Assembly: GCA_965644265.1 (NCBI GenBank)
Contig: OZ286471.1
Location: forward strand, 46,872,001 to 46,936,000
Reading direction: 5' to 3'
Length of the DNA stretch: 64,000 nucleotides
DNA from: Glycera tridactyla
Taxonomy: Eukaryota
Part shown: piece by piece, positions 3,776-64,000 of the stretch
Position numbering within the stretch: position 1 is the stretch's first letter
Layout of the letters: each line of letters starts with the position of its first letter
Position numbers and translations under genes: made by a program
The notes under the pieces: model-generated
Told to the model about the DNA's origin: nothing
Seen by the model: only the letters and a program-made list of their open reading frames with translations
Database searches by the model: none

Positions 3776-3860
<85 letters not shown>

Positions 3861-4656: not shown

Positions 4657-4742
<86 letters not shown>

Positions 4743-18326: not shown

Positions 18327-18357
<31 letters not shown>

Positions 18358-21300
18358 TGCTGCTGCCCTCGCTGTCGTCATTGTCGTCCTCATCTCGGGG
18401 TTGCATCGGGGGGGGGGGGGCATTTCACTCATTTTATCAACTTTGTTGCCCTCTTCGACACAATCAGGGGCCATAATGCTCCCCTATATTGACAAGGAGG
18501 TTGCACCTTTTTTTTAATACAAAGTGAACCCATTTTGAAGAATATTTTGAAGAAATGCCCCCTTTTCTAGAATTCAAGGGGACAAATGCCCCCAATTTTG
18601 GAAAATCTGGATGCAAGCCTGCATCTTCATCTTCATCGCTGCAATCATCATTATAAACTGCCGAATCACCGCCTACGTGGGCAGCAGCTCAGGCAGCACC
18701 ATATCACTGAATGATACATAAGTCTGAGTCTTTTGAATTGATATAAATCGTAAACAGCGCGCATCTTTAAGAAATAATTTGAAGTGGACTCGCGTGAGAA
18801 TGTGACGACGTGTGCAATCAAATCCGAGTCAATATTACGACTGTATTTATTCCCCATAGTGGGGCTTTAGCTCATTGATCTGAAGCAGTGAGAGACGGGC
18901 TATTAAGTCCAATCTGCAGTAGACCCATGTATTGATCTCGATTTTGATTCATATTGAGTAGGCGAGTAAGCGAGCGGGTAGTGTATATACCGGGTTGATT
19001 TTTCTCTTGCAGCCGGCTGTTACATTCCAACAACTGGTGGAACTGCTGCTGGTGCTCGCTGCGTCTTCCCGTTCTTCTATCAGAGTAAAAGATACTGGGA
19101 ATGCACGACGGTGAATAATGGGAATACACCATGGTGCTCCACCACGGTATACTACAGCGTCGACAAGCAGTGGGGAAACTGCTTGGGTATTGACATCTTG
19201 CATTTTTCAAGTCCTGTCACCCCTCTCCCCATCACCCGCCCAAGCTGTCCTACCTCACATCTCAGTTTGTGTAACCCATTCACTTCGACCTAGCCATACC
19301 ATACTTACACCTGATGGTGGTACTTCGGAGTTCACAAACTATTGGCCGATAGTGGTCTAAAAAATTAGCACAATTTTGATCCGTGTTGTGGCAAAATTGC
19401 CAATGTTTGTCTCTCATTGATCGCCACCACATAAGAAGTTTTCCTGTATGATCCAAGTCATGCACATCGCATAGGCATCTCAAAATAGTCCAGATGGTGC
19501 TCAGGGGAGAGAGAGAAAGCATGCAAGTAACCGAACACCCATTAGTATGGGTCGTTTGTCACCACTGTAGCGAAAACATAACACATTATTATCCTTTTAT
19601 CGACAGTGAGTAGTATCCGTCATCCTCTCAATAATATATAACAAAAACTCAACCCAACCAAGGAGACGCTGCTTCGATCAACTAAAAACTGTAGTAGCAG
19701 TGTCGTGTATCAGTTTATTCTTTCAACAGAGGTCGTATGTGAAGAAACAACTGTTCCAAGATCATCGTTGCCTCCCTCCTTTACAACGGAAGTGACTTCT
19801 CCTACAACGGAAGTGACTTCTCCTACGATGGGAGTGACTTCTCCAAGGCTCAATACTCTTCCAGGTACTGCAATAGCATGTAGCATTCATTCTTCACAAC
19901 AATGATCTTCATGCTTCTTGATACTATGGAACTTTTGAGTGTATATCCGTGACCCTCTACATTGTACAAGAATCATATTTGCAATCATTATCCAAACCAA
20001 ATAGTACACCGCAGTGACTGAGATTTTGATCATCATCACCTTTTTCCCACCAAGGCGCGGTGTTGAGTGATTTTACCAACACTTAATTCATTAAGATGTC
20101 AAACATTATCTGCATTTGGGGGAAGTTTTCACTGGATGATGTCAAATGGCTATTCAACCTTTGTCTGAAAGCTGTTAGTCCGTTTCGTTGATCCCCAGAT
20201 AACTTCGTAATGCAATGGACACGGCCTCCTGTTTGTATGCACGTGGAACACAACAATATAATGTCGAATGTTGGAAGGTTATCCTTTCATAGAAAAGTAA
20301 TAAATAGTTCCTCATCCATCACACCAATGACGCGTACAATCGATTAGTATCACTTCTTAGTGGAAGTTCATTCTCTGCGAATCCATATCATGACATGGAA
20401 TTCCTTGTTGAGCCTTTCATATATTCCAAGTTTTTGTTCACTGCATTTTTCAGATGGCTGTTACATACCTACAGTGGGTGGAAATGCCAATGGTGATAGC
20501 TGTGTATTCCCTTTTTTCTACCGAGGCGAAAAATACTGGCAATGTACTGTCGTGAAGAACAACAACCGGGCATGGTGTTCTACAACTACCTTCTATGATG
20601 TTGACAAAAAATGGGGCAATTGTTTAGGTAGGCAAGTTGGTAATAGACTGCTAGTTTTGTTGTGAACCCAACTTGTTACCATGAATTTTCATTTCATACT
20701 GAGTGTGCCATGAATATATCGCACTTGTGTACACGTTGTCTTAAGAAATGACAACACAGCATGGTGTTCCACAAATACACTCTATGATGTTAACAAACGA
20801 TGGGGCAATTGTTTAACTAGGCAAGTTGGTGATAGCTCCCTAATTCTTTCATGAATTCAAGTGGTCACGATGAAAGATTTCCAGAGTGTCCCAATAATTC
20901 AATGGAGCTTGTAATACTTTTTCAATCTATGCCTGATGTTCATAGGTCGGTAAAGTTTTTATGAAGCTGGCTCGATAGTAAATGCTCAGATCAAAGTATT
21001 ATGAGATGTAGACAGGCCACTGATGATAATATGCAATTAGAATAAAATAAGAATGGGCATAGGTACTGTATACTGTGATTAGTTCGTGCAACCCCATCCA
21101 CTGTTTGAAAATCCCTATTTGTCTTAGGAGTGAATTGCCTAAAAAGCATTATACCATTGATTAATCTATTTCTGACGTAAAATCATTCGATATTGGAAGT
21201 TCGAAGAGACTCATAGAAACAATCCTATACGTTATTGACAAGTGGCTAAACTGAAGATGAAGAGATATTAAGTGTCACCATAAAAATTGCATGATTGTGA

Positions 21301-24300
21301 TACGTGGGATATCCCTGACGCACTTTGCAAGCACCAAATGGATCTGCCCTTTAGAAAAAATATGTTTTTCTGAATATCGTATCATCGTATTTTCTATATT
21401 TGCCTAGATCTCAAATGCGAACAATCAACAACTGTTTCATCAACATTATCAACAATGACACCCTCATCAGCATCACCCAGATCAACTGTACTTCCGACAC
21501 AGCAGGTCACTCTACCAGGTAATATACCTCTGCCACCTATACCATATGAGGTTTTTGACCATTCTCACGGATGAATCAGGAGATAAATACAGGAGTGCAA
21601 ACCCATATTACATCTCCGCAAAATATATTTGTTTGCCTATCCAGTGACTGCATGATTTGAAATTGCCATTTGAAGTATGTTCCCCCAAATGAACTAGTTC
21701 ATAAGTAATTGTGAACACCTCTGAAATGTCACCGAGGCAAATTGGTCAAAATGATGACCGATGCCTATCTCTAATTGGTCGGGAAGCTGTCACTCTGGTA
21801 TTTTGCTGGCGAGTTGGTTGTTTTAGACTACCACAAATTCTTCCCTCCTTTTTTTGAGAGCATTTGCCCCGCACTTCGTTTGAACTATAACATTGCGAGA
21901 TTGCTTTCACTGTATCATCAACCGTTATTTAGTTCATTCTTGAGAAGGCATTCAGTATTTCCTCAATAATTCATGCTTCCTACAAACCACTTTTTCGGAT
22001 TGGCTACAGAATATTGTTGAATGCATATAATTCTTACATCTAAGAATTTTAGGCAAACAATAGCTGGTAAATCTCTCGATTTATCAGGATCACTTTACAC
22101 AGAATATACTACCAGCACGAATTGCATAGACTTCGTTGTCATCTCCATAAAATATTTCATGGGTTCATTCACTGCATTTTCCAGATGGTTGTTATATACC
22201 TACAGTGGGTGGAACTGCCAATGGTGATCGCTGTGTCTTTCCATTTTACTACGGAGGTGATACATACTGGCAATGTACTGTCGTAAAGAACAACAACCGG
22301 GCATGGTGTTCCACAACTAGCTTCTATGATGTTGACAAACGATGGGGCAATTGTTTAGGTAGGCACGTTGGTGATAAACTGCTAGTTTCGTTGTGAACGT
22401 AACTTGTTAGTGTATTTTCATTGCACCATGGATATTTTGAATTTATGATGCTCGTCCATCTGGACCTGAAGTTTGTGAGTTGATTTTGAAAGTTCAGAGT
22501 ATCTTTGCATGACGCTGATAAGTAACTGAGATGATAGTGAACGAAACATTCCTCATCAGATTGTTCTTTGGTACTCAATCAGACAGTGCCTGATTATGAT
22601 ATGTGAAATTCTGTTGAAACAATTTGCAAATGTCAAATTGAATTGCACATTCACCAATTGACCATTTCCTGCATACTGCCTGCTCTACATTATCCTAGAT
22701 CTCAAATGCAGCGAATCCACCCTTGTTGCATCAACATCAGAAACAGAAGCATCCTCATCGGCATCACCCAGGCCAACCATACTTCCGACACAGCAAGTCA
22801 CTCTACCAGGTAAATAACATCTGGCACCTATATTGTATGAGGTTTTTGGCCATTCTCACAAATGTATTAGGTGATAGTATAGGAATGCAACCTCTTATTA
22901 CATCTCCACAAAAGATATTTGTTTGCCAATCCAGTGACTGCATGATCTGGAATTGCCATTTGGAGTTTGTTCCCCCAGAAATGCACTAGTTCATAAGTAA
23001 GTGTATACACCTCTGAAATGTCACTGAGGCGAATCGGTCAAAACAATGAGCAATATCTATCTCCAACTGGTCGGGAAGCTGTTACTCTGGCATTTTGATG
23101 GCAAATTAGTCAATGCAGACTACCACAGATTCTTCCCACTTTTTTTGAGAGCATTTGCTCAGCACTTCCTCTGAACCAGAACATTGCAGAATTGGTCTCT
23201 CTGTATCATCAAGCATTATGTAGTTCATAGTTGAAACGGCATTCATTAACTCCTCAATACTTCTTGCTTTCTACAGACCATTTTTTCTGATGGGTTACAG
23301 AATATCGTCAAATGCATATGTAGTTCCTACCTCAAGGGATTTTAGGCAAACAATAGCTCGTGACTTACTCAATTCATCAGTATCACTTTCTTCAGAAAAT
23401 ACACCAACCATGCATTGCATTGTCTACATTGTCATCTCCATGATATATTTCATGGGTTCATTCACTGCATTTTCCAGATGGTTGTTATATACCTACAGAG
23501 GGTGGAACTGCCAATGGTGATCGCTGTGTCTTTCCATTTTTCTACGGAGGTGATACATACTGGCAATGTACTGTCGTAAAGAACAACAACCGGGCATGGT
23601 GTTCTACAACTGCCTTCTATGATGTTGACAAACGATGGGGCAATTGTTTAGGTAGGCACGTTGGTGACAAACTGCTAGTTTCGTTGTGAACGTAACTTGT
23701 TACAGTGTATTTTCATTGCACCATGAATATATTGAATTTGTGATGCTCGTCCATCTGGACATGAAGTTTGTGAGTTGATTTTGAAAGTTCAATGAATCTC
23801 TGAAGCAGGTCTGTATGACGCTGATAACTAGCTAAGATGATAGTGAACGAAACATTCCTCATCAGATTGTTGTTTGTTACTCAATCAAACAGTGCGTGAT
23901 TATGATATGTAGTTCTCGTCAAAACAATTTGTGATTGTCAAATTAACTTGCACCTTCACAAACTGACCATTTCCTGCATACTGCCTTCTCTACATTATCC
24001 TAGATCTCGAATGCGGCGAATCCACCCTTGCTGCATCAACATTAGTAACAGAAGCATCCTCATCGGCATCACCCAGGCCAACCATACTTCCGACACAGCA
24101 AGTCACTCTACCAGGTAATTAATATCTGGCACCGATATTTTATGAGGTTGGCCATTCTCACAAATTCATTAGGTGATACTATAGGAATGCGAACCCATAT
24201 TACATCTCCGCAAAAAAAAATTGTTTGCCAATCCAGTGACTGCATGATCTGGAATTGCCATTTGGAGTTTGTTCCCCCAGAAATGCACTAGTTCATAAGT

Positions 24301-27300
24301 AAGTGTATACACCTCTGAAATGTCACACATGCGAATTGGTCAAAATGATGAGCAATTTCTATCTCCAACTGGTCGGGAGGCTTTTACTCTGGTATTTTGA
24401 TGCCAAGTTGGTAGTTTCAGACTACCACAAATTCTCCCCTCCTTTTTTTTGAGAGCATTCGCTCAGCACTTTCTTTGAACAACACCATTGCAGAATTGGT
24501 TTCACTGTATCATCAAACGGTATGTAGTTCATTCATGAAAAGGCAATCAGTATTCCCTAAATACTTCATGCTTCCTACAAACCACTTTTTCGGATGGTTA
24601 CAGAATAGTGTTGCATGCATATGTAGTTCTTACCTCTAGGAATTTTAGGCAAACAATAGCTGGTAATTCAATCGATTCATCAGTATCACTTCCTACAGAA
24701 AATACAACCATCACGAATTGTTTAGACTTCATTGTCATCACCATAATATATTTCATGGGGTCATTCACTGCATTTTCCAGATGGTTGTTATATACCTACA
24801 GTGGGTGGAACTGCCAATGGTGATCGCTGTGTCTTTCCATTTTACTACGGAGGTGTTACGTACTGGCAATGTACGGTCGTAAAGAATAACAACCGGGCAT
24901 GGTGTTCTACAACTACCTTCTATGATGTTGACAAACGATGGGGCAATTGTTTAGGTAGGCAAGTTGGGGATAAACTGCTAATTTCGTTGTGAACGTAACT
25001 TGTTACAGTGTATTTTCATTTGATTATCATTATTTCGAATTTGTGATGCTTGTCCATCTGGACCTGAATTTTGCGAGTTGATTTTGAAAGTTCAGAGTTT
25101 CTTTGATGCAGTCCTGCATGACGCTGATAAGTGACTGAGATGATAGTGAAAGAAACATTCATCATCAGATTGTTGTTTGTTACTCAATCAAACAGTGCGT
25201 GATTATGATATGTAGTTCTCGTTAAAACAATTTGCAAGTGTCAAATTGAATTGCACATTCAACAATTGACCATTTCCTGCATACAGCCTTCTCTACATTA
25301 TCCTAGATCTCGAATGCAGCGAATCCACCCTTGTTGTATCAACATCAGAAACAGAGGCATCCTCATCGGCATCACCCAGGCCAACCATACTTGCGACACA
25401 GCAAGTCACTCTACCAGGTAATTGATATCTGGCACCTATATTGTATGAGGTTTTTGGCCATTCTCACAAATGCATTAGGTGATACTATAGGAATGCAAAC
25501 TCTTTATTACATCTCCGCAGAAGATTTTTGTTTGCCAATCCAGTGGCTGCATGATCTGGAATTGCCATTTGGAGTTTGTTCCTCCAGAAATGCACTAGTT
25601 CATAAGTGAGTGTATTCACCTCTGAAATGTCACTAATGCGAAATGGTAAAAAAAATGAGCAATTTCTATCTCCAACTGGTCGGGAAGCTATTAATCTGGC
25701 ATTTTGATGGCAAGTTGGTGATTTCAGACTACCACAAATTCTTCCCTCCTTTTTTTTGAGAGCATTTGCTCACCACTTTCTTTGAACCACAACAATGCAG
25801 AATTGGTCTCATTGTATCATCAAACGTTATGTAGTTCATAGTTGAAACGGCATACAGTAACTCCTCAATAATTCATGCTTCCTACAAACCATTTTTCTGA
25901 TGGGTTACATAATATCGTCAAATGCGTATGTAGTTCTTACCTCAAGGGATTTTAGGCAAACAATAGCTCGTGACTGACTCAATTCATCAGTATCACTTTC
26001 TACAGAGAATACACCAACCACAAATTGCATAGTCTACATTGTCATCTCCATAATATATTTCATGGGTTCATTCACTGCATTTTCCAGATGGTTGTTATAT
26101 ACCTACCGTGGGTGGAACTGCCAATGGTGATCGCTGTGTCTTTCCATTTTTCTACGGAGGTGATACATACTGGCAATGTACTGTCATTAAGAACAACAAC
26201 CGGGCATGGTGTTCAACAACTGCCTTCTATGATGTTGACAAACAATGGGGCAATTGTTTAGGTAGGCACGTTGGTGACAAACTGCTAGTTTCGTTGTGAA
26301 CGTAACTTGTTACAGTGTATTTTCATTGCACCATGAATATATTGAATTTGTGATGCTCGTCCATCTGGACATGAAGTTTGTGAGTTGATTTTGAAAGTTC
26401 AGAGTATCTCTGAAGCAGGTCTGTATGATGCTGATAACTAACTAAGATGATAGTGAACGAAACATTCCTCATCAGATTGTTGTTTGTTACTCAATCAAAC
26501 AGTGCGTGATTATAATATATAGTTCTCGTTAAAACAATTTGTTATTGTCAAATTGACTTGCACATTCACAAACTGACCATTTCCTGCATACTGCCTGCTC
26601 TACATTTTCCTAGATCTCGAATGCGGCGAATCCACCCTTGCTGCATCAACATTAGTAACAGAGGCATCCTCATCGGCATCACCCAGGCCAACCATACTTC
26701 CCACACAGCAAGTCACTCTACCAGGTAATTGATATCTGGCACCGATATTGTATGAGGTTTTTGGCCATTCTCACACATTTATTAGATGATAGTATAGGAA
26801 TGCAAACCCATATTACATCTTCGCAAAAGACATTTGTTTGCCAACTAGTGACTGCATGATCTGGAATTGCCATTTGGAGTTTGTTCCCCCAGAAATGCAC
26901 TAGTTCATAAGTAAGTGTATACACCTCTGAAATGTCACACATGCAAATTGGTCAAAATGATGAGCAATTTCTATCTCCAACTGGTCGGGAGGCTTTTACT
27001 CTGGCATTTTGGTGCCAAGTTGGTAGTTTCAGACTGCCACAAATTCTCCCCTCCTTTTTTTCGAGAGCATTCGCTCAGCACTTTCTTCGAACAACACCAT
27101 TGCAGAATTGGTTTCACTGTATCATCAAACGTTATGTAGTTCATTCCTGTTAAGGCAATTTGTATTTCCTGAATACTTCATGCTCCCTACAAACCACTTT
27201 TTCGGATGGTTACAGAATAGTGTTGCATGCATATGTAGTTCTTACCTCTAGGAATTTTAGGAACACAATAGCTGGTAATTAAATTGATTTATCAATATCA

Positions 27301-54300: not shown

Positions 54301-57300
54301 GTATTTACTCACCCCTTCCTATTGATCTACAATATTGTGGAATTGGATACACTGTATCATCCAACAATATGTACTTCAATCTTGAGAAGCCATCTCGTAT
54401 CTCCGCAATACTTCATGCTTCAAACAGACCGATTTTTTGGATTAGTTAAAGAATATTGTCCAAAACATATGTAGTTCTCCCCTTTGGGAATTTCAGGCCA
54501 TCAATAGCTCCTAACTCGCTCGATTATTCAGTTTCACTTTATACAGAAAATACTACTATCACAGATTGCATGGACTCTATTGCCATCGCCATGATATATT
54601 TCATGATTCCATTCACTGCATTTTCCAGATGGTTGCTATATACCTACAGTTGGTGGAACTGCCAATGGTGCTAGCTGTGTCTTTCCATTTTTCTACGGAG
54701 GTGACAAATACTGGCAATGTACTGTCGTGAAGAACAACAATCAGGCATGGTGTTCTACAACTACCTTCTATGATGTTGACAAAAAATGGGGCAATTGTTT
54801 AGGTAGGCAAGTTGGTAATAGACTGCTTGTTTTGTTGTGAACTCAACTTGTTTCCATGGATTTTCATTTCATACTGATTGTGCCATGAATATATTGAATT
54901 TGTGATGCACGTCAATCTTGACCTGAAGTTTGTGAGTTGATTCCGAAGATTCAGAGAGTATCTTCGAAGCAGTCCTGCATGGCACTGATAAGTAACTGAG
55001 ATATCTGTAACCGGAACATTCTTACATCCGATTGTTGATTGTTACTCAATTCAACAGTGTGTGATTATGATATGTAGAATTTCGTTGAAGCAATTAACAA
55101 CTGTCAAATTGAATTGCACATTCACCAATTGACTATTTCCTGCATACTGCCTGCTCTACATTTTCCTAGATCTCAAATGTGGCGAATCCACCCTTGTTGC
55201 ATCGACATTAGTAACAGAGGCATCCTCATCGGCATCACCCAGGCCATCCATACTTCCCACACAGCAAGTCACTCTACCAGGTAATATACCTCTGGCAGCT
55301 ATATCATGAAGTTTCTGGCCATTCTCTAAAGGCATTAGGTGATTTCATACAAATGCAAACCCATACTACATCTGTCACAAAAAAGATTGCTTGTTGCTTC
55401 TGTGACTGCATGATCTGGAATTGCCATTTGGAGCCTGTTATCCAAAAATGCACTAGTTCATAAGTGATGGTTAATATCTCTGGAATGTCACTGAGGTGAA
55501 TTGGTCACCGATAATGACCAATGTCTATCTGTAATTGGTCGCATATTCTTCCCTCCTCTTCCAAACAGTATTCACTCAGCACTCCCTTTGATCTACAATA
55601 TTGTGGAATTGGATACACTGTATCATCCAACATTATGTACTTCAATCTTGAGGAGCCATTTAGTATCTCCGCAATACTTCATGCTTCAAACAGACCGCTT
55701 TTTTTGGATTAGTTAAAGAATATTGTCCAAAACTTATGTAGTTCTCCCCTTTAGGAATCCAGGCAATCAATAGCTCCTAACTCGCTCGATTATTCAGTTT
55801 CACTTTCTACAGAAAATACTACTATCACAGATTGCATGGACTCCATTTCCATCGCCATGATATATTTCATGGGTCCATTCACTGCATTTTCCAGATGGTT
55901 GCTATATACCTACAGTGGGTGGAACTGCCAATGGTGCTAGATGTGTCTTTCCATTTTTCTACGGAGGTGACAAATACTGGCAATGTACTGTCGTGAAGAA
56001 CAACAACCAGGCATGGTGTTCTACAACTACCTTCTATGATGTTGACAAAAAATGGGGCAATTGTTTAGGTAGGCAAGTTGGTAATAGACTGCTAGTTTTG
56101 TTGTGAACTCAACTTGTTTCCATGGATTTTCATTTCATACTGATTTGCCATGAATATATTGAATTTGTGATGCACGTCAATCTTGACCTGAAGTTTGTGA
56201 GTTGATTCCAAAGATTCAGAGAGTATCTTTGAAGCAGTCCTGTGTGGCACTGATAAGTAACTGAGATATTGGTAACCAAAACATTCTTACATCAGATTGT
56301 TGATTGTTACTCAATTCACCAGTGTGTGATTATGATATGTAGAATTTCGTTGAAGCAATTTACAACTGTCAAATTGAATTGCACGTTCACCAATTGACCA
56401 TTTCCTGCATACTGCCTGCTCTACATTTTCCTAGATCTCAAATGTGGCGAATCCACCCTTGTTGCATCAACATTAGTAACAGAGGCATCCTCATCGGCAT
56501 CACCCAGGCCAACCATACTTCCAACACAGCAAGTCACTCTACCAGGTAATATACCTCTGGCAGCTATATCATGAAGTTTCTGGCCATTCTCAAAAAGGCA
56601 TCAGGTGATTTTATACGAATGCAAACCGATACTACATCTGTCAAAAAAAAGATTGTTTGCCGCTTCTGTGACTGCATGATCGGGAATTGCCATTTGGAGC
56701 CTGTAATCCAAAAATGCACTAGTTCATAAGTGATAGTCAATGTCTCTGGAATGTCACTGAGGTGAATTGGTCACCAATAATGACCAATGTCTATCTCTAA
56801 TTGGTTGCAGATTCTTCCCTCCTCTTCCAAACAGTATTCACTTGGCACTCCCTTTGATCTACAACATTGTGGAATTGGATAAACTGTATCATCCAACATT
56901 ATGCACTTCAATCTTGAAAAGCCATTTTGTATCTCCGCAATACTTCATGCTTCAAACAGACCGCTTTTTTGGATTGGTTATGGAATATTGTCCAAAACAT
57001 GTGTAGTTCTCCCTTCTCGGAATTTCAGGCAATCAATAGCTCCTAACTCGCTCGATTTATCAGTTTCACTTTCTACAGAAAATACAACTCGCTTGATTTA
57101 TCAGTTTCACTTTCTACAGAAAATACAACCATCACAGATTGCATGCACTCCATTGCCATCTCCATGATATATTTCATGGGTTAAATCACTGCATTTTTCA
57201 GATGGTTGCTATATTCCTACAGTTGGTGGAACTGCCAATGGTGCTAGCTGTGTCTTTCCATTTTTCTACGGAGGTGACAAATACTGGCAATGTACTGTCG

Positions 57301-60300
57301 TGAAGAACAACAACCGGGCATGGTGTTCTACAACTACCTTCTATGATGTTGACAAAAAATGGGGCAATTGTTTAGGTAGGCAAGTTGGTAATAGACTGCT
57401 AGGTTCGTCGTGAACTCAACTTGTTACTGTGGATTCTAATTTCATGCTGAGTGTGCCATGAATATATTGAATTTGTGATGCACATATATCTGGACCTGAA
57501 GTTTGTGAGTTGATTCCGAAAGTTCAGAGAGTATCTTTGGAGCAGTCCTGCATGGCACTGATGATTAACTGAGATAATGGTGACCGAAACATTCTCACAT
57601 CCGATCGTTGATTGTTACTCGATTCAACAGTGTGTTATTATTTATATGTAGAATCTCATTGAAGCAATTTGCAACTGTAAAATTGGATCGCACATTCACC
57701 AATTGACCATTTTCTGCATACTGCCTGCTCTACATTTTCCTAGATCTCAAATGCAGCGAATCCACCCTTGTTGCATCAACATTAGTAACAGAGGCATCCT
57801 CATCGGCATCACCCAGGCCAACCATACTTCCAACACAGCAAGTCACTCTACCAGGTAATATACCTCTGGCAGCTATATCATGAAGTTTCTGGCCATTCTC
57901 TAACGGCATTAGGTGATTTTATACGAATGCAAACCCATACTACATCTGTCACAAAAAAGATTGTTTGTCGCTTCTGTGACTGCATGATCGGGAATTGCCA
58001 TTTGGAGCCTGTAATCCAAAAATGCACTAGTTCATAAGTGATAGTCAATGTCTCTGGAATGTCACTGAGGCAAATAGGTCACCAATAATGACCAATGTCT
58101 ATCTCTAATTGGTCGCAGATTCTTCCCTCCTCTTCCAAACAGTATTCACTCGGCACTCCCTTTGATCTACAATATTGTGGAATTGGATACACTGTATCAT
58201 CCAACATTATGTACTTCAATCTTGAAAAGCCATTTTGTATCTCTGCAATACTTCATGCTTCAAACAGACCGCTTTTTTGGATTGGTTATGGAATATTGTC
58301 CAAAACATGTGTAGTTCTCCCTTCTCGGAATTTCAGGCAATCAATAGCTCCTAACTCGCTCGATTTATCGGTTTCACTTTCTACAGAAAATACAACTCGC
58401 TCGATTTATCAGTTTCACTTTCTACAGAAAATACAACCATCACAGATTGCATGGACTCCATTGCCATCTCCATGATATATTTCATGGGTTAAATCACTGC
58501 ATTTTTCAGATGCTTGCTATATACCTACAGTTGGTGGAACTGCCAATGGTGCTAGCTGTGTCTTTCCATTTTTCTACGGAGGTGACAAATACTGGCAATG
58601 TACTGTCGTGAAGAACAACAACCGGGCATGGTGTTCTACGACTACCTTCTATGATGTTGACAAAAAATGGGGCAATTGTTTAGGTAGGCAAGTTGGTAAT
58701 AGACTGCTAGGTTCGTCGTGAACTCAACTTGTTACTGTGGATTCTAATTTCATGCTGAGTGTTCCATGAATATATTGAATTTGTGATGCACATATATCTG
58801 GACCTGAAGTTTGTGAGTTGATTCCGGAAGTTCAGAGAGTATCTTTGAAGCAGTCCTGCATGGCACTGATGATTAACTGAGATTATGGTAATCGAAACAT
58901 TCTCACATCCGATCGTTGATTGTTACTCGATTCAACAGTGTGTGATTATGATATGTAGAATCTCATTGAAGCAATTTGCAACTGTAAAATCGAATCGCAC
59001 ATTCACGAGTTGACCATTTCCTGCATACTGCCTGCTCTACATTTTCCTAGATCTCAAATGCAGCGAATCCACCCTTGTTGCATCAACATTAGTAACAGAG
59101 GCATCCTCATCGGCATCACCCAGGCCAACCATACTTCCAACACAGCAAGTCACTCTACCAGGTAATATACCTCTGGCAGCTATATCATGAAGTTTCTGGC
59201 CATTCTCTAAAGGCATTAGGTGATTTTATACGAATGCAAACCCATACTACATCTCTCACAAAAAAGATTGCTTGTCGCTTCTGTGACTGCATGATCTGGA
59301 ATTGCCATTTGGAGCCTGTTATCCAAAAATGCACTAGTTCATAAGTGATTGTTAATATCTCTGGAATGTCACTGAGGTGAATTGGTCACCAATAATGACC
59401 AATGTCTGTCTGTAATTGGTCACATATTCTTCCCTCCTCTTCCAAACAGTATTCACTCAGCACTCCCTTTGATCTACAATATTTTGGAATTGGATACACT
59501 GTATCATCCAACAATATGTACTTCAATCTTGAGAAGCCATTTAGTATCTCCGCAATACTTCATGCTTCAAACAGACCGCTTTTTTGGATTAGTTAAAGAA
59601 TATTGTCCGAAACATGTGTAGTTCTCCATTCTCGGAATTTCAGGCAATCAATAGCTCCTAACTCGCTCGATTTATCAGTTTCACTTTCTACAGAAAATAC
59701 AACCATCACAGATTGCATGGACTCCATTGCCATCTCCATGATATATTTCATGGGTTCATTCACTACATTTTCCAGATGCTTGCTATATACCTACAGTGGG
59801 TGGAACTGCCAATGGTGCTAGCTGTGTCTTTCCATTTTTCTACGGAGGTGACAAATACTGGCAATGTACTGTCGTGAAGAACAACAACCGGGCATGGTGT
59901 TCTACAACTACCTTCTATGATGTTGACAAAAAATGGGGCAATTGTTTAGGTAGGCAAGTTGGTAAAAGACTGCTAGGCTCGTTGTGAACTCAACTTGTTA
60001 CTGTGAATTTTAATTTCATGCTGAGTGTTCCATGAATATATTGAGTTTGTGATGCACATATATCTGGACCTGAAGTTTGTGAGTTGATTCCGAAAGTTCA
60101 GAGAGTATCTTTGAAGCAGTCCTGCATGGCACTGATAAGTAACTGAGATAATGGTAACCGAAACATTCTTACATCCGATCATTGATTGTTACTCAATTCA
60201 ACAGTGTGTGGTTATGATATGTAGAATCTCATTGAAGCAATTTGCAACTGTAAAATTGAATCGCACATTCACCAATTGACCATTTTCTGCATACTGCCTG

Positions 60301-63300
60301 CTCAACATTTTCCTAGATCTCGAATGCAGCGAATCCACCCTTGTTGCATCAACATTAGTAACAGAGGCATCCTCATCGGCATCACCCAGGCCAACTATAC
60401 TTCCAACACAGCAAGTCACTCTACCAGGTAATATACCTCTGGCACCTATATCATGAAGTTTCTGGCCATTCTCACAAATGCATCAGGTGATAATATACGA
60501 ACGCAAACCCATATTACATCAGTCAAAAAACAGATTGTTTGCCCCTCCTGTGACTGCATGATCTGGAATTGCCATGTTGAGCCTGTTATCCAAAAATGCA
60601 CTAGTTCATAAGTGATAGTCAATGTCTCTGGAATGTCACTGAGGTGAATTGGTCACCAATGATGACCAATGTCTATGTGTAATTGGTCGCAGATTCTTCC
60701 CTCCTCTTCCAAACAGTATTCACTCGGCACTCCCTTTGATCTACAACATTGTGGAATTGGATAAACTGTATCATCCAACATTATGCACTTCTATCTTGAA
60801 AAGCCATTTTGTATCTCTGCAATACTTCATGCTTCAAACAGACCGCTTTTTTGGATTGGTTAAAGAATATTGTCCAAAACATGTGTAGTTCTCCCTTCTC
60901 GGAATTTCAGGCAATCAATAGCTCCTAACTCGCTCGATTTATCAGTTTCACTTTCTACAGAAAATACAACTCGCTCGATTTATCAGTTTCACTTTCTACA
61001 GAAAATACAACCATCACAGATTGCATGGACTCCATTGCCATCTCCATGATATATTTCATGGGTTAAATCACTGCATTTTTCAGATGGTTGCTATATACCT
61101 ACAGTGGGTGGAACTGCCAATGGTGCCAGCTGTGTCTTTCCATTTTTCTACGGAGGTGACAAATACTGGCAATGTACTGTCGTGAAGAACAACAACCGGG
61201 CATGGTGTTCTACAACTACCTTCTATGATGTTGACAAAAAGTGGGGCAATTGTTTAGGTAGGCAAGTTGGTAATAGACTGCTAGGTTCGTCGTGAACTCA
61301 ACTTGTTACTGTGGATTCTGATTTCATGCTGAGTGTGCCATGAATATATTGAATTTGTGATGCACATATATCTGGACCTGAAGTTTGTGAGTTGATTCCG
61401 AAAGTTCAGAGAGTATCTTTGAAGCAGTCCTGCATGGCACTGATGATTAACTGAGATAATGGTAACCGAAACATTCTCACATCCGATCGTTGATTGTTAC
61501 TCGATTCAACAGTGTGTGATTATGATATGTAGAATCTCATTGAAGCAATTTGCAACTGTAAAATTGAATTGCACATTCACCAGTTGACCATTTCCTGCAT
61601 ACTGCATGCTCTACATTTTCCTAGATCTCAAATGCAGCGAATCCACCCTTGTTGCATCAACATTAGTAACAGAGGCATCCTCATCGGCATCACTCAGGCC
61701 AACCATACTTCCAACACAGCAAGTCACTCTACCAGGTAATATACCTCTGGCAGCTATATCATGAAGTTTCTGGCCATTCTCTAAAGGCATTAGGTGATTT
61801 TATACAAATGCAAACCCATACTACATCTGTCACAAAAAAGATTGCTTGTCGCTTCTGTAACTGCATGATCTGGAATTGCCATTTGGAGCCTGTTATCCAA
61901 AAATGCACTAGTTCATAAGTGATGGTTAATATCTCTGGAATGTCACTGAGGTGAATTGGTCACCAATAATGACCAATGTCTGTCTGTAATTGGTCGCATA
62001 TTCTTCCCTCCTCTTCTAAACAGTATTTACTCACCCCTTCCTATTGATCTACAATATTTTGGAATTGGATACACTGTATCATCCAACAATATGTACTTCA
62101 ATCTTGAGAAGCCATCTCGTATCTCCGCAATACTTCATGCTTCAAACAGACCGATTTTTTGGATTAGTTAAAGAATATTGTCCAAAACATATGTAGTTCT
62201 GCCTTCTCGGAATTTCAGGCCATCAATAGCTCCTAACTCGCTCGATTATTCAGTTTCACTTTATACAGAAAATACTACTATCACAGATTGCATGGACTCT
62301 ATTGCCATCGCCATGATATATTTCATGATTCCATTCACTGCATTTTCCAGATGGTTGCTATATACCTACAGTGGGTGGAACTGCCAATGGTGCTAGCTGT
62401 GTCTTTCCATTTTTCTACGGAGGTGACAAATACTGGCAATGTACTGTCGTGAAGAACAACAATCAGGCATGGTGTTCTACAACTACCTTCTATGATGTTG
62501 ACAAAAAATGGGGCAATTGTTTAGGTAGGCAAGTTGGTAATAGACTGCTTGTTTTGTTGTGAACTCAACTTGTTTTCATGGATTTTCATTTCATACTGAT
62601 TGTGCCATGAATATATTGAATTTGTGATGCACGTCAATCTTGACCTGAAGTTTGTGAGTTGATTCCGAAGATTCAGAGAGTATCTTCGAAGCAGTCCTGC
62701 ATGGCACTGATAAGTAACTGAGATATCTGTAACCGGAACATTCTTACATCCGATTGTTGATTGTTACTCAATTCAACAGTGTGTGATTATGATATGTAGA
62801 ATTTCGTTAAAGCAATTTACAACTGTCAAATTGAATTGCACATTCACCAATTGACTATTTCCTGCATACTGCCTGCTCTACATTTTCCTAGATCTCAAAT
62901 GTGGCGAATCCACCCTTGTTGCATCAACATTAGTAACAGAGGCATCCTCATCGGCATCACCCAGGCCATCCATACTTCCCACACAGCAAGTCACTCTACC
63001 AGGTAATATACCTCTGGCAGCTATATCATGAAGTTTCTGGCCATTCTCTAAAGGCATTAGGTGATTTTATACGAATGCAAACCCATACTACATCTCTCAC
63101 AAAAAAGATTGCTTGTCGCTTCTGTAACTGCATGATCTGGAATTGCCATTTGGAGCCTGTTATCCAAAAATGCACTAGTTCATAAGTGATGGTTAATATC
63201 TCTGGAATGTCACTGAGGTGAATTGGTCACCAATAATGACCAATGTCTGTCTGTAATTGGTCGCATATTCTTCCCTCCTCTTCTAAACAGTATTTACTCA

Positions 63301-63831
63301 GCACTCCCTTTGATCTACAATATTTTGGAATTGGATACACTGTATCATCCAACATTATGTACTTCAATCTTGAGAAGCCATTTAGTATCTCCGCAATACT
63401 TCATGCTTCAAACAGACCGCTTTTTTGGATTAGTTGAAGAATATTGTCCAAAACATATGTAGTTCTCCCCTTTAGGAATTTCAGGCAATCAATTGCTCCT
63501 AACTCGCTCGATTTATCAGTTTCACTTTCTACAGAAAATACAACTCGCTCGATTTATCGGTTTCACTTTCTACAGAAAATACAACCATCACAGATTGCAT
63601 GGACTCCATTGCCATCTCCATGATATATTTCATGGGTTAAATCACTGCATTTTTCAGATGGTTGCTATATACCTACAGTGGGTGGAACTGCCAATGGTGC
63701 TAGCTGTGTCTTTCCATTTTTCTACGGAGGTGACAAATACTGGCAATGTACTGTCGTGAAGAACAACAACCGGGCATGGTGTTCTACAACTACCTTCTAT
63801 GATGTTGACAAAAGATGGGGCAATTGTTTAG
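448..63831 (+). CDS. Partial spliced gene (5' and 3' ends outside window): giant extracellular-type protein of >=46 tandem FN2 domains separated by S/T/P-rich linkers
   Basis: About 90 exons with AG/GT boundaries, all phase 1-1 and length divisible by 3, no stops seen; FN2 signature C-x-FPF-x-Y-x5-C...WC...WG-x-C in every domain exon. Confidence 0.9.
1190..1426 (+). CDS. Exon: linker fused to FN2 #2
   Basis: gtag|ATCCC...TCTAG|gtatg, 237 nt; DPVCEVPASEE...DGCIVPTTGGSGTERKCLFPFVYDG...WCAVSEGGEEFLWGNCL. Confidence 0.85.
2040..2156 (+). CDS. Linker exon
   Basis: ccag|ATTAT...CGAAG|gtagt, 117 nt; DYVCGSNKMM...QARESE with Cys at position 4. Confidence 0.75.
2405..2628. mobile_element. ~225-bp MITE-like element (possibly hAT-related termini), copy 1
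   Basis: TIRs CAGGGTTGCATTCAG / CTGGACGCAACCCTG (13/15 match); internally homologous to reverse complement of 18396-18621; no clear TSD. Confidence 0.6.
3018..3188 (+). CDS. FN2 exon #3
   Basis: tcag|GATGT...TCAAG|gtgaa, 171 nt; GCFTPTSGGTGNGENCRFPFWYSAG...WCSLTTFYDSSQEWGYCQ. Confidence 0.9.
3400..3875. repeat. Pyrimidine-rich degenerate (TCTG)n tract ending in pure (TC)n at 3779-3856
   Basis: Direct reading. Confidence 0.9.
3971..4132 (+). CDS. Linker exon (3' boundary less certain)
   Basis: ccag|AGGAG...AAGAG|gtagg, 162 nt; EEQCGDAV...STSSTTTK...; 4132 is the first phase-1 GT I found. Confidence 0.7.
4659..4742. repeat. (TA)n microsatellite
   Basis: Direct reading, two interruptions. 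Confidence 0.95.
4792..4959 (+). CDS. FN2 exon #4
   Basis: atag|TATGT...CTTAG|gtaaa, 168 nt; VCFTPTYDGNAGGSPCEFPFWYAG...WGYCL. Confidence 0.9.
   Translation, partial: YVSRQPMMGMPEVVLVNSPSGTLDHCTLTASTSIDQRRGVPSPPSLNRNSYGDIA
5400..5474 (+). CDS. Thr/Ser-rich linker exon
   Basis: gcag|ATGAA...TCCAG|gtaga, 75 nt; DEFCAGVTTTTSTSTSTTSSPTGIP. Confidence 0.85.
6210..6383 (+). CDS. FN2 exon #5 (absent from ORF track)
   Basis: tcag|TTGGA...CTTAG|gtact, 174 nt; VGCYIPTSGGSAGGARCIFPFQYKG...WCATTSNYDEDKLWGNCL. Confidence 0.9.
7133..7234 (+). CDS. Linker exon
   Basis: gtag|AACCG...CCCAG|gtaga, 102 nt; EPVCDGVTESALPLPVTRSPETP...VTLP. Confidence 0.85.
7763..7936 (+). CDS. FN2 exon #6
   Basis: tcag|CGGGT...CCGAG|gtaga, 174 nt; AGCFIPTIGGNANGARCVFPFFYDG...WCATTSDYDADKRWGNCR. 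Confidence 0.9.
8494..8600. repeat. Compound (GT)n/G-run/(GA)n microsatellite
   Basis: Direct reading. Confidence 0.85.
8740..8844 (+). CDS. Thr/Ser-rich linker exon
   Basis: acag|ACCTC...TGAAG|gtaca, 105 nt; DLTCVTSTSPATSTLKTTTSTSTSSPATTTTTTPE. Confidence 0.85.
9936..10109 (+). CDS. FN2 exon #7 (absent from ORF track)
   Basis: tcag|GTGAT...CTTAG|gtaaa, 174 nt; GDCYTPTSGGTAGGARCSFPFLYNG...WCATTLLYNVDRLWGNCL. Confidence 0.9.
10642..10791 (+). CDS. Thr/Ser-rich linker exon
   Basis: gcag|ATCGA...ACCAG|gtacc, 150 nt; DRVCGIASPSTMSSMTSRTTT...TLIP. Confidence 0.85.
11561..11728 (+). CDS. FN2 exon #8
   Basis: ttag|TTGGT...CTTAG|gtgaa, 168 nt; VGCYTPTEGGTADGAPCVFPFVYRG...WGNCL. Confidence 0.9.
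   Translation: MVAIHRRKEGRQMEHHVYSPSSTEVKPICNVPTSEMITSSGVPPRPSTTTSGGIA
11925..11963. mobile_element. Terminal fragment of the TA-flanked MITE family seen at 16011-16376
   Basis: TACAGTGCCTGCTCTAAAGACCACCTCTGTAAAGACCAC matches the GAACCTGCTCTAAAGACCACCTCT end of that family. Confidence 0.55.
12436..12648 (+). CDS. Exon: linker fused to FN2 #9 (ORF track shows the wrong frame)
   Basis: gcag|ATGTC...TCTCG|gtacg, 213 nt; DVFCPPETTTGAPTFLPLGCYIPTRNARGICVFPFIYRG...WCSLTSNYDVDKRWGECL. Confidence 0.9.
12885..12930. repeat. 9-bp tandem repeat (GATATATGT/C) x~5
   Basis: Direct reading. Confidence 0.75.
12958..13050 (+). CDS. Thr/Ser-rich linker exon
   Basis: tcag|AGGAG...GCCAG|gtaca, 93 nt; EEQCESSSTTTVLPVKPSTTAAVSATSTSLP. 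Confidence 0.85.
13159..13887. mobile_element. Fold-back / long inverted-repeat element in intron
   Basis: Arms ~13195-13393 and ~13414-13632 are reverse complements; outer arms 13159-13192 and 13849-13887 also pair; element class is inferred. Confidence 0.7.
15239..15412 (+). CDS. FN2 exon #10
   Basis: atag|GTGGA...TGAAG|gtgag, 174 nt; GGCFTPTTGGNARGDPCVFPFYYLG...WCATTTLYDIDKRWGNCE. Confidence 0.9.
16011..16185. mobile_element. ~170-bp MITE copy A (pogo/Tc1-mariner-like CAGT...ACTG termini, left end eroded)
   Basis: GAACCTGCTCTAAAGACC...GGTCTTTATAGACAGGTTCTACTG-TA; internal TAAAGACCAC subrepeats. Confidence 0.7.
16217..16376. mobile_element. ~160-bp MITE copy B, inverted relative to copy A, TA-flanked
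   Basis: TA-CAGTCGAACCTG...CAGGTTCGGCTG-TA; reverse complement aligns along copy A. Confidence 0.75.
16524..16628 (+). CDS. Thr-rich linker exon (absent from ORF track)
   Basis: gcag|ATGAA...ACTTG|gtatg, 105 nt; DEVCFSTARFTATAVPLQTTVTTQHTSTRQTLVPL. Confidence 0.85.
17498..17668 (+). CDS. FN2 exon #11
   Basis: acag|ATTGC...TCTAG|gtata, 171 nt; DCYIPTTGGNSNGDPCAFPFFYRG...WGDCL. Confidence 0.9.
   Translation: MATSPLLGGIPMAILAPSLSSIGVCAILSVSPSTTTIVCGVRQQYFMTWISDGETV
17740..17960. repeat. Degenerate (GAT/AAT)n trinucleotide tract
   Basis: Direct reading. Confidence 0.65.
18128..18259 (+). CDS. Thr/Ser/Pro-rich linker exon
   Basis: tcag|ATGCG...GGCAG|gtgat, 132 nt; DARCQESSTAGSPTTPAPSST...ASTLA. 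Confidence 0.85.
18262..18395. repeat. (CGT/CAT)n trinucleotide tract
   Basis: Pure (CGT)n near 18326-18356 in degenerate flanks. Confidence 0.85.
18396..18621. mobile_element. MITE-like element copy 2, opposite orientation to 2405-2628
   Basis: Ends CGGGGTTGCATCGG / CTGGATGCAAGCCTG; reverse complement aligns by eye with 2405-2628. Confidence 0.6.
19013..19186 (+). CDS. FN2 exon #12
   Basis: gcag|CCGGC...CTTGG|gtatt, 174 nt; AGCYIPTTGGTAAGARCVFPFFYQS...WCSTTVYYSVDKQWGNCL. Confidence 0.9.
19730..19864 (+). CDS. Linker exon with internal 21-nt repeat x3
   Basis: acag|AGGTC...TCCAG|gtact, 135 nt; EVVCEETT...TTEVTSPTTEVTSPTMGVTSP...TLP. Confidence 0.85.
20454..20627 (+). CDS. FN2 exon #13 (first array-type)
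   Basis: AG|ATGGC...TTTAG|GT, 174 nt. Confidence 0.9.
20728..20830 (+). pseudogene. Degenerate 3'-half FN2 exon fragment
   Basis: AAGAAATGACAACACAGCATGGTGTTCC...TGGGGCAATTGTTTAACTAGGC; no acceptor, donor GGTAG changed to ACTAG. Confidence 0.75.
21408..21518 (+). CDS. Linker exon (array type)
   Basis: AG|ATCTC...ACCAG|GT, 111 nt; DLKCEQSTT...QVTLP. Confidence 0.9.
22185..22358 (+). CDS. FN2 exon #14
   Basis: 174 nt, AG/GT, phase 1-1. Confidence 0.9.
22699..22809 (+). CDS. Linker exon
   Basis: 111 nt, AG/GT. Confidence 0.9.
23478..23651 (+). CDS. FN2 exon #15
   Basis: 174 nt, AG/GT; PTEGG variant. Confidence 0.9.
24004..24114 (+). CDS. Linker exon
   Basis: 111 nt, AG/GT. Confidence 0.9.
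24781..24954 (+). CDS. FN2 exon #16
   Basis: 174 nt, AG/GT. Confidence 0.9.
25307..25417 (+). CDS. Linker exon
   Basis: 111 nt, AG/GT. Confidence 0.9.
26088..26261 (+). CDS. FN2 exon #17
   Basis: 174 nt, AG/GT. Confidence 0.9.
   Translation: MVVIYLPWVELPMVIAVSFHFSTEVIHTGNVLSLRTTTGHGVQQLPSMMLTNNGAIV
26614..26724 (+). CDS. Linker exon
   Basis: 111 nt, AG/GT. Confidence 0.9.
27393..27566 (+). CDS. FN2 exon #18
   Basis: 174 nt, AG/GT; TVSG variant. Confidence 0.9.
27919..28065 (+). CDS. Chimeric exon: 5' half of linker fused in frame to 3' half of FN2
   Basis: ctag|ATCTC...GAAACAGACAAATACTGG...TTTAG|gtagg, 147 nt; DLKCSESTLVVSTLET-DKYWQCAVVKNNNRAWCSTTTFYDVDKKWGNCL; inclusion in mRNA not shown. 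Confidence 0.7.
28433..28543 (+). CDS. Linker exon
   Basis: 111 nt, AG/GT. Confidence 0.9.
29198..29371 (+). CDS. FN2 exon #19
   Basis: 174 nt, AG/GT. Confidence 0.9.
29582..29620 (+). pseudogene. Orphan 3' FN2 exon fragment followed by a second copy of the downstream intron
   Basis: CCTTCTATGATGTTGACAAAAAATGGGGTAATTGTTCAG|gtgggc with no upstream acceptor. Confidence 0.75.
29978..30088 (+). CDS. Linker exon
   Basis: 111 nt, AG/GT. Confidence 0.9.
30685..30858 (+). CDS. FN2 exon #20
   Basis: 174 nt, AG/GT. Confidence 0.9.
31226..31336 (+). CDS. Linker exon
   Basis: 111 nt; DLKCGESTLVASTLVTEASSSASPRPTILPTQQVTLP. Confidence 0.9.
31933..32106 (+). CDS. FN2 exon #21
   Basis: 174 nt; DGCYIPTVGGTANGASCVFPFFYGGDKYWQCTVVKNNNRAWCSTTTFYDVDKQWGNCL. 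Confidence 0.9.
32455..32565 (+). CDS. Linker exon
   Basis: 111 nt, AG/GT. Confidence 0.9.
33181..33354 (+). CDS. FN2 exon #22
   Basis: 174 nt, AG/GT. Confidence 0.9.
33703..33813 (+). CDS. Linker exon
   Basis: 111 nt, AG/GT. Confidence 0.9.
34430..34603 (+). CDS. FN2 exon #23
   Basis: 174 nt, AG/GT. Confidence 0.9.
34971..35081 (+). CDS. Linker exon (RPSILP variant)
   Basis: 111 nt, AG/GT. Confidence 0.9.
35676..35849 (+). CDS. FN2 exon #24
   Basis: 174 nt, AG/GT. Confidence 0.9.
36198..36308 (+). CDS. Linker exon
   Basis: 111 nt, AG/GT. Confidence 0.9.
36924..37097 (+). CDS. FN2 exon #25
   Basis: 174 nt, AG/GT. Confidence 0.9.
37446..37556 (+). CDS. Linker exon
   Basis: 111 nt, AG/GT. 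Confidence 0.9.
38173..38346 (+). CDS. FN2 exon #26
   Basis: 174 nt, AG/GT. Confidence 0.9.
38714..38824 (+). CDS. Linker exon (RPSILP variant)
   Basis: 111 nt, AG/GT. Confidence 0.9.
39440..39613 (+). CDS. FN2 exon #27
   Basis: 174 nt, AG/GT. Confidence 0.9.
39962..40072 (+). CDS. Linker exon
   Basis: 111 nt, AG/GT. Confidence 0.9.
40689..40862 (+). CDS. FN2 exon #28
   Basis: 174 nt, AG/GT; NQAW variant. Confidence 0.9.
41230..41340 (+). CDS. Linker exon (RPSILP variant)
   Basis: 111 nt, AG/GT. Confidence 0.9.
41957..42130 (+). CDS. FN2 exon #29
   Basis: 174 nt, AG/GT. Confidence 0.9.
42498..42608 (+). CDS. Linker exon
   Basis: 111 nt, AG/GT. Confidence 0.9.
43225..43398 (+). CDS. FN2 exon #30
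   Basis: 174 nt, AG/GT. Confidence 0.9.
43766..43876 (+). CDS. Linker exon
   Basis: 111 nt, AG/GT. Confidence 0.9.
44493..44666 (+). CDS. FN2 exon #31
   Basis: 174 nt, AG/GT. Confidence 0.9.
45034..45144 (+). CDS. Linker exon (RPSILP variant)
   Basis: 111 nt, AG/GT. Confidence 0.9.
45760..45933 (+). CDS. FN2 exon #32
   Basis: 174 nt, AG/GT. Confidence 0.9.
46301..46411 (+). CDS. Linker exon
   Basis: 111 nt, AG/GT. Confidence 0.9.
47028..47201 (+). CDS. FN2 exon #33
   Basis: 174 nt, AG/GT. Confidence 0.9.
47550..47660 (+). CDS. Linker exon
   Basis: 111 nt, AG/GT. Confidence 0.9.
48273..48446 (+). CDS. FN2 exon #34
   Basis: 174 nt, AG/GT; start of the continuous DKKW block. Confidence 0.9.
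48795..48905 (+). CDS. Linker exon
   Basis: 111 nt, AG/GT. Confidence 0.9.
49521..49694 (+). CDS. FN2 exon #35
   Basis: 174 nt, AG/GT. Confidence 0.9.
50061..50171 (+). CDS. Linker exon
   Basis: 111 nt, AG/GT. Confidence 0.9.
50828..51001 (+). CDS. FN2 exon #36
   Basis: 174 nt, AG/GT. Confidence 0.9.
51370..51480 (+). CDS. Linker exon
   Basis: 111 nt, AG/GT. Confidence 0.9.
52096..52269 (+). CDS. FN2 exon #37
   Basis: 174 nt, AG/GT. Confidence 0.9.
52637..52747 (+). CDS. Linker exon
   Basis: 111 nt, AG/GT. Confidence 0.9.
53362..53535 (+). CDS. FN2 exon #38
   Basis: 174 nt, AG/GT. Confidence 0.9.
53903..54013 (+). CDS. Linker exon
   Basis: 111 nt, AG/GT. Confidence 0.9.
54629..54802 (+). 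CDS. FN2 exon #39
   Basis: 174 nt, AG/GT. Confidence 0.9.
55170..55280 (+). CDS. Linker exon
   Basis: 111 nt, AG/GT. Confidence 0.9.
55895..56068 (+). CDS. FN2 exon #40
   Basis: 174 nt, AG/GT. Confidence 0.9.
56435..56545 (+). CDS. Linker exon
   Basis: 111 nt, AG/GT. Confidence 0.9.
57202..57375 (+). CDS. FN2 exon #41
   Basis: 174 nt, AG/GT. Confidence 0.9.
57744..57854 (+). CDS. Linker exon
   Basis: 111 nt, AG/GT. Confidence 0.9.
58510..58683 (+). CDS. FN2 exon #42
   Basis: 174 nt, AG/GT; DACY variant. Confidence 0.9.
59051..59161 (+). CDS. Linker exon
   Basis: 111 nt, AG/GT. Confidence 0.9.
59776..59949 (+). CDS. FN2 exon #43
   Basis: 174 nt, AG/GT; DACY variant. Confidence 0.9.
60317..60427 (+). 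CDS. Linker exon
   Basis: 111 nt, AG/GT. Confidence 0.9.
61084..61257 (+). CDS. FN2 exon #44
   Basis: 174 nt, AG/GT. Confidence 0.9.
61625..61735 (+). CDS. Linker exon
   Basis: 111 nt, AG/GT. Confidence 0.9.
62351..62524 (+). CDS. FN2 exon #45
   Basis: 174 nt, AG/GT. Confidence 0.9.
62892..63002 (+). CDS. Linker exon
   Basis: 111 nt, AG/GT. Confidence 0.9.
63658..63831 (+). CDS. FN2 exon #46
   Basis: 174 nt, AG/GT; DKRW variant. Confidence 0.9.
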
Positions 63832-64000
63832 GTAGGCAAGTTGGTAAAAGACTGCTAGGCTCGTTGTGAACTCAACTTGTTACTGTGAATTTTAATTTCA
63901 TGCTGAGTGTGCCATGAATGTATTGAGTTTGTGATGCACATATATCTGGACCTGAAGTTTGTGAGTTGATTCCGAACGTTCAGAGAGTATCTTTGAAGCA

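Follow-up and report, generated by a model that had tools for sequence, protein, structure and literature searches.

We describe a 64,000-nucleotide stretch of the Glycera tridactyla genome (C32:46,872,001–46,936,000 of a 2.04-Gb animal assembly; hereafter, the window) that carries most of a long coding tandem array. The whole array consists of 54 units, each pairing one intact exon for a fibronectin type II (FN2) domain with one exon for a Ser/Thr/Pro-rich linker. Our analysis suggests, with a probability of roughly 0.8, that what the window shows is the 5′ two thirds of a tandem amplification within a giant invertebrate gene of the secreted, ‘beads on a string’ type. We read 344 kb around the window (C32:46,752,001–47,096,000), give all array positions in window coordinates, and number the units u1–u54. 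Units 13–19 of a preliminary description of the window correspond to u1–u7, and its unit 20 to u8.

The repeating unit measures ~1.27 kb and runs head to tail, in the order FN2 exon (174 nt), intron A, linker exon (111 nt), and intron B. Unit u10 serves as an example:

33181..33354, + strand: FN2 exon of u10, 174 nt, phase 1-1, AG/GT; encodes GCYIPTVGGTANGASC...WGNCL; Pfam fn2 E = 1.1e-14
33355..33702, + strand: intron A of u10; nucleotide diversity (π) among core units 0.070
33703..33813, + strand: linker exon of u10, 111 nt, phase 1-1, AG/GT; encodes LKC(G/S)ESTLVASTLVTEASSSASPRPTILPTQQVTLP
33814..34429, + strand: intron B of u10, the intron with the 19-bp and 41-bp indels

The FN2 exon covers the complete Pfam profile, so that a single exon bears the whole domain. 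The linker exon encodes 36 residues, among them 13 Ser/Thr, 4 Pro, and one Cys, and gave no match in the Pfam scan. Both exons are phase 1-1 and together measure 285 nt (174 + 111), a multiple of 3; the gain or loss of whole units is therefore neutral to the reading frame. The 19-bp and 41-bp indels of intron B generate unit length classes of 1248, 1267, and 1308 bp. All 34 FN2 exons in the window are 174 nt long and flanked by AG/GT, and all 33 linker exons are 111 nt long, stop-free, and likewise flanked; the exon lengths and the lack of stops agree with the first description. The same integrity extends over the whole array, where AG/GT was found at 54/54 FN2 exons and at the 53/53 linker exons checked (45 core, 8 edge), with no stop, frameshift, or lost splice site among the 107 exons.

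Two views of the window reveal the amplification. A 20-mer spacing analysis gave dominant periods of 1245–1309 bp from ~20.4 kb to the window end, with no repeated 20-mers before ~20 kb and near saturation past ~31 kb. A regular-expression and translation scan identified 46 FN2 modules on the + strand, 12 of them diverged and irregularly spaced before 20.4 kb, followed by 34 that recur every 1.25–1.8 kb. These results bear out the proposal that a two-exon unit with 34 FN2 exons in the window was amplified together with its introns, downstream of divergent domains with unique introns. Tandem Repeats Finder called no repeat in the window because its longest period (500 bp) lies below the unit length.

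The array starts at 20454, close to the onset first proposed (20437), but does not stop at position 64000: it outruns the window end by ~30 kb and continues to ~93809, a length of 73.4 kb, or 68.2 kb minus an inserted element. Diverged FN2 exons return on its 3′ side, up to 152 kb, and in the other direction FN2 exons reach back past −120 kb upstream of the window. The + strand of the 344 kb read holds at least 224 FN2 modules, spread over 272 kb, and first-pass FN2 candidates genome-wide exceed 1,000, in several clusters. We know of no protein with more FN2 modules than this giant FN2 gene, and a literature search for large invertebrate FN2 arrays returned nothing relevant. The FN2 exons end at 152 kb, and at least nine exons for PAN_1 (apple) domains occupy ~160–190 kb on the + strand. 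This FN2-then-PAN order recalls, in reverse, plasminogen and HGF with their PAN and kringle domains.

Layers, blocks, and scars of the array

Unit alignment, partition BLAST, and a tree resolve the array and its 5′ flank into layers of different age, with block duplications inside the core:

1..20453, + strand: 12 diverged FN2 exons with unique introns, 5′ of the array and assigned to the same giant FN2 gene (regular-expression and translation scan; Pfam; no repeated 20-mers)
20454..30684, + strand: older 5′ layers, u1–u7; introns 72–89% and exons 92.5–97% like the core
u1: oldest 5′ layer; intron B about 72% like the core
u2–u5: old 5′ layer; introns 72–82% like the core; pairs u2/u4 (92.3%) and u3/u5 (95.6%)
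u6 and u7: transitional layer of chimeric units
30685..64000 within the window (u8–u33 and the start of u34), + strand: homogeneous core, 46 units (u8–u53) in all, ending at ~93809
u54: old 3′ unit; FN2 exon 89.7% like the core, introns almost unrecognisable
31933..39439, + strand: recent three-unit block duplication, u9-u10-u11 versus u12-u13-u14 (99.8%, 100%, and 98.8%), the copies lying 3 units (about 3743 bp) apart
41957..47027, + strand: four adjacent near-identical units, u17–u20 (98.3–99.8%), from single-unit duplications

The tree is a ladder, u1 > u2–u5 > u6 > u7 > core, with two roughly positional clades inside the core. The unit phylogeny proposed as a check in the preliminary description thus places its diverged units outside the core. 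Specifically, units 13–19 are diverged as claimed, and unit 20 (30685–31932), which had been grouped with them, already belongs to the core. The 45 aligned core units (u8–u52) share 90.8–100% identity, with a mean of 94.3%. The term ‘nearly identical’, used for units 21–46, fits their exons but not whole units, whose introns differ by ~7%.

The two edges of the array are dissimilar. The 5′ flank is graded into the older layers, whereas the 3′ edge is abrupt: intron B of u53 breaks off after 152 nt and gives way to other sequence, including an interspersed repeat of ~910 bp. This repeat (94011–94920) marks the 3′ edge of the array and has copies 88–95% identical, with about 9,000 first-look candidates. 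Homogenisation had been described as polarised, and we reject polarity as a feature of the array itself. The window stops 30 kb short of the end of the homogeneous block, diverged FN2 exons follow on the 3′ side too, and older material flanks the core on both sides; the impression of polarity is mostly a window-edge effect, and only the graded ladder is confined to the 5′ edge.

A core unit usually has its best match 2, 3, or 5 units away, not in the adjacent unit. In addition to the blocks listed above, lagged relatives include u23/u28 (99.2%), u30/u35/u40 (98–99%), u31/u36/u41 (98–99%; 98.7–99.0%), and u44/u47/u50 (98.3–99.5%). Peaks of the 20-mer spacing at 2574, 3743, and 6374 bp agree with multi-unit blocks. 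A 2.5% clustering cut separates 23 subfamilies that are interleaved along the array, and the unit-length classes travel with them. The spacing of nearest relatives by 2, 3, and 5 units points to multi-unit duplication by unequal crossing-over, and the pairing of u2 with u4 and of u3 with u5 to an old two-unit duplication.

From these patterns, we infer that the array grew by unequal crossing-over of unit blocks rather than by unit-by-unit homogenisation, and that its copy number is still changing. Repeated unequal homologous recombination would have duplicated blocks of 1, 2, 3, and 5 units, giving rise to higher-order repeat patterns and a young 46-unit core. That core would be bordered 5′ by progressively older layers and 3′ by an old unit, followed by diverged FN2 exons. 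The pattern is like that of alpha-satellite higher-order repeats in that relatives lie several units apart, subfamilies interleave, and the edge is more diverged than the center. Unlike alpha-satellite, the array is protein-coding and its exons are under purifying selection. The architecture adds a further, clear-cut case to a mode of gene growth that is already known and introduces no new principle.

Three rearrangement junctions interrupt the regular order, all at layer boundaries, and one insertion lies farther downstream. The preliminary anatomy of the window was incomplete here, having overlooked the chimeric exon and both exon remnants.

27919..28065, + strand: chimeric in-frame exon in u6, 147 nt, AG/GT, phase 1-1; linker positions 1–49 fused to FN2 positions 75–174
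29582..29620, + strand: FN2-exon remnant (positions 136–174) in intron A of u7, a rearrangement scar
20751..20815, + strand: FN2-exon remnant (positions 109–173, donor site lost) in intron A of u1
77947–83117: insertion of 5,171 bp, intron A of u45; ends TG..CA, target duplication (A)ATAG

The chimeric exon does not encode Cys1 of the FN2 domain. It is a scar left when a non-homologous, in-frame deletion joined an old-type to a core-type unit. If spliced in, it would yield half an FN2 module and an uneven cysteine count. The insertion in u45 has at least 29 full-length copies genome-wide, 98–99% identical, many of which form same-strand pairs 11.8 kb apart, and one a pair 13.4 kb apart. Because near-identical copies occur as same-strand pairs at 11.8 kb, the insertion is, judged by its sequence, a solo long terminal repeat (LTR) of a very young ~17-kb element with unusually long (5.2-kb) LTRs.

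Exon constraint and rival explanations

The co-amplified introns provide a direct yardstick for constraint on the exons. Among the 45 aligned core units, to which the diversity, indel, and core pN/pS figures refer, π is 0.014 in the FN2 exon and 0.027 in the linker exon, versus 0.070 in intron A and 0.067 in intron B. Segregating sites number 41 of 285 exonic and 336 of 982 intronic positions (Fisher P = 2e-11). Indels measure 1, 2, 3, 5, 19, 41/42, and 98 bp, and each of the 21 distinct events is intronic, with exons making up 22.5% of the unit (P = 0.0047). The pN/pS ratio is 0.32 in the core and 0.36–0.55 between the old layers and the core. These values uphold the earlier view that indels are intronic and the exons are under purifying selection.

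Conservation in the old layers is equally focused. Compared with the core consensus, u2–u5 are 93.5% identical in the FN2 exon, 95.7% in the linker exon, and 94–94.5% in the last 50 nt of introns, versus 61–80% in intron interiors. Conservation centered on exons and 3′ splice-site regions is the pattern expected of genuinely spliced exons. At the level of sequence, it fits constraint on splicing and coding and is not what long gene-conversion tracts would leave behind. All exons have stayed intact under purifying selection acting on protein and splice signals, while the introns drifted.

The low silent-site divergence of the old layers bears on how the units came to be alike. Their exons are closer to the core than silent-site neutrality predicts (pS 0.08–0.11, compared to 0.18–0.28 for introns), as would suit an old array of ~50 units and fixed copy number kept alike mainly by gene conversion, that is, by true concerted evolution and not by block duplication and deletion. 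However, likeness extends over whole units and blocks, including introns and shared indel states, and the 3.7-kb three-unit block is 98.8–100% identical. High identity in the old layers is limited to exons and ~50 nt at 3′ splice sites, without long tracts, and unit-length classes go with sequence subfamilies. We give gene conversion as the main force a small but real chance and favor growth by block duplication.

Could the assembler have over-expanded a few copies, or collapsed many more? Some neighboring blocks are 99.8–100% identical over 1.2–3.7 kb, and the array was judged from the assembly and from contigs of public runs. Against an artefact, mean unit divergence is 5.7% with 23 subfamilies at the 2.5% cut, the sequence is gap-free (0 N bases in the 344 kb read), and unique scars, together with the single solo-LTR insertion, anchor positions inside the array. 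Four public runs were available as contigs, none recorded as RNA, and two of them match small shares of the stretch; contig depth in these runs is not copy number. Contigs of an independent 2016 run match core introns and exons at 93–99% identity, with several variants over the same core positions, and one joint in them goes back 2,479 bp, which implies tandem order. A search of the assembly for haplotigs, or another haplotype, of the array flanks found none; the flanks are single-copy apart from interspersed repeats. Overall, an assembly artefact is very unlikely. It is scarcely credible that the array is a decaying, unexpressed relic outside the functional message. Such a relic would agree with the one chimeric exon without an FN2 cysteine and the two exon remnants, and with none of the public runs recorded as RNA, expression of the array is deduced from constraint on the sequence. 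Yet 0 of 107 exons have a stop, frameshift, or lost splice site, exon diversity is 2.5–5 times below intron diversity with a pN/pS of 0.32, and the 3′ splice-site regions are conserved.

Several points nonetheless weigh against an expressed, still-growing array within one giant gene. Membership of the FN2 exons out to +152 kb, and of the PAN exons beyond, in one transcript is putative. Splicing, exon inclusion, and expression of the array are deduced from conservation. Since silent-site divergence falls below intron divergence, plain purifying selection may be joined by some exon-centered gene conversion or by constraint on silent sites. Copy number was read from one haplotype only, and the glycosylation and ligand discussed below are guesses from composition and family.

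FN2 modules, known counterparts, and possible function

The identity of the amplified domain is well defined. Pfam fn2 (PF00040) matches the FN2 modules over its full 42-position profile at 54.6–65.3 bits (cut-off 22.2; E 1e-14 to 5e-18), and the upstream module at 6212–6382 gives E = 5e-18. All 54 units contain the C-x-F-P-F...C...W-C...W-G-x-C pattern, which comprises the four canonical cysteines and the aromatic core. The kringle profile (PF00051) gave no match, and fn2 was the sole family at E ≤ 0.01 in the Pfam scan. The nearest solved structures are FN2 domains of MMP-9, MMP-2, and fibronectin (1l6j, E = 1.3e-29; 1eak; 1e88), and the ESM Atlas confirmed FN2, with the nearest clusters from Chordata and Nemertea. 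The array modules share the four cysteines and the core residues FPF, Y, and W with these proteins, which have 2–3 FN2 domains compared to at least 224 at the giant locus.

Unlike the FN2 domains of MMP-9, MMP-2, and fibronectin, each module has two further cysteines, one of them coded on the next exon. An extra Cys precedes FN2 Cys1 by 14–15 residues in 219 of the 224 modules in the 344 kb read. A phase-1 donor follows the Cys4 codon at a distance of exactly 4 nt in 222 of 224 modules, and the next exon contributes a Cys that completes a C-x4-C motif across the splice junction. This motif matches the C-terminal pattern of kringles, and both extra cysteines occupy kringle-like positions; we propose that they may form a third, outer disulfide equivalent to kringle Cys1–Cys6. 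Kringles and FN2 domains are reportedly related in structure, to judge by the title of Ozhogina et al. (2001). The far-upstream FN2 modules also carry a kringle-like PWCYTS motif.

The preliminary description likened the array to the kringle IV-2 (KIV-2) repeat of LPA. The KIV-2 unit measures 5.5 kb, has exons of 160 and 182 bp, and occurs in 1 to >40 copies with very little between-copy variation (PMC4378929; PMC6314250, PMC11462820). In both systems, a two-exon unit was amplified with both introns while the frame was kept, and diverged single-copy paralogous units flank the repeat (KIV-1 and KIV-3 to KIV-10 in LPA). All 54 FN2 units follow this plan, head to tail with their introns and with a coding length divisible by 3. 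The likeness fails in exon design and in copy similarity. The LPA kringle is split over two exons, whereas here the whole FN2 domain sits on one exon and the spacer alone on the other. KIV-2 copies are far more alike; the FN2 units average 94.3% identity, with a minimum of 90.8% and an intron π of ~0.07, and only some blocks, arranged in higher-order patterns, reach 99–100%. The FN2 unit is also 4.4 times shorter, and we saw no protease domain with the array, unlike in LPA.

A second comparison is human DMBT1 (gp340, salivary agglutinin), in which the SRCR domain and the SID spacer are on separate symmetric exons. The FN2 array has the same design, with a whole domain on one exon and a Ser/Thr-rich spacer on another. 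In both, a small disulfide-rich domain alternates with a Ser/Thr-rich spacer, which in DMBT1 is the O-glycosylated SID. The two differ in domain family and size (~110 aa for SRCR and ~57 aa for FN2) and in repeat number (13–14 repeats of larger units in DMBT1, 54 units here), and DMBT1 ends in CUB and ZP domains, unlike the FN2 array. DMBT1 is a mucin-hybrid glycoprotein whose SRCR repeat is a multiallelic copy-number variant of 7–21 domains (PMC9038570). Copy-number variation is thus proven in DMBT1, whereas the FN2 array is known from one assembled haplotype. By analogy, LPA KIV-2 is a fair architectural counterpart, and DMBT1 SRCR/SID is the closer design.

The array would add ~5,100 residues to the encoded protein, in the form of FN2 beads on spacers that, from their composition, are probably O-glycosylated. 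Amplification would lengthen the protein and raise its binding valency, perhaps as a ligand binder of the extracellular matrix or mucus type. The best-matching solved FN2 domains are the collagen- and gelatin-binding ones of gelatinases. More tentatively, the 54-unit block may be the fast-turnover, length-polymorphic part of a giant matrix or mucus protein of ~270 FN2 modules and >25,000 residues. Individuals would then differ in their number of six-cysteine, kringle-clasped beads, with copy number selected for valency as in DMBT1 or LPA. If true, this would be an independently evolved invertebrate coding variable number tandem repeat (VNTR) of exceptional size. Some duplicated blocks are only 0–0.2% apart and probably arose more recently than alleles typically coalesce in outbred marine invertebrates, so that length variants may plausibly be segregating.

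The locus is a very clean natural illustration of gene growth by unequal crossing-over, made possible by symmetric (phase 1-1) exons. A single haplotype displays the age layers, the multi-unit blocks, the scars, and a dated solo-LTR insertion, constraint on exons can be measured directly against co-amplified introns, and the giant FN2 gene appears to be still expanding. Should copy number vary between individuals, the array would parallel, in an invertebrate, the coding VNTRs of LPA and DMBT1, which matter in medicine, and would call for caution in gene annotation and in short-read analysis of the locus.

Other FN2 loci and neighboring features

Further FN2 sequences were found upstream and elsewhere in the genome. 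At C32:46,698,570, upstream of the stretch read, an FN2 match lies in an open frame of 1,637 codons, which greatly exceeds the usual one-module exons and may be a multi-module giant exon. A regular FN2 array at C42:45,650,000–45,685,000 has a period of 2.2–2.5 kb and recurring identical Pfam scores and is possibly homogenised as well. At C42:73,181,900–73,183,100, FN2 modules are just 160–320 bp apart, and for this reason the array there is probably intron-poor.

Two other features lie near the array. An interspersed repeat of ~225 bp, with thousands of copies at 77–84% identity, occupies window positions 18400–18630, in an intron region 5′ of the array. On the opposite (−) strand, at 220.7–223.7 kb, a neighboring gene has a 991-codon open frame that encodes many C2H2 zinc fingers.

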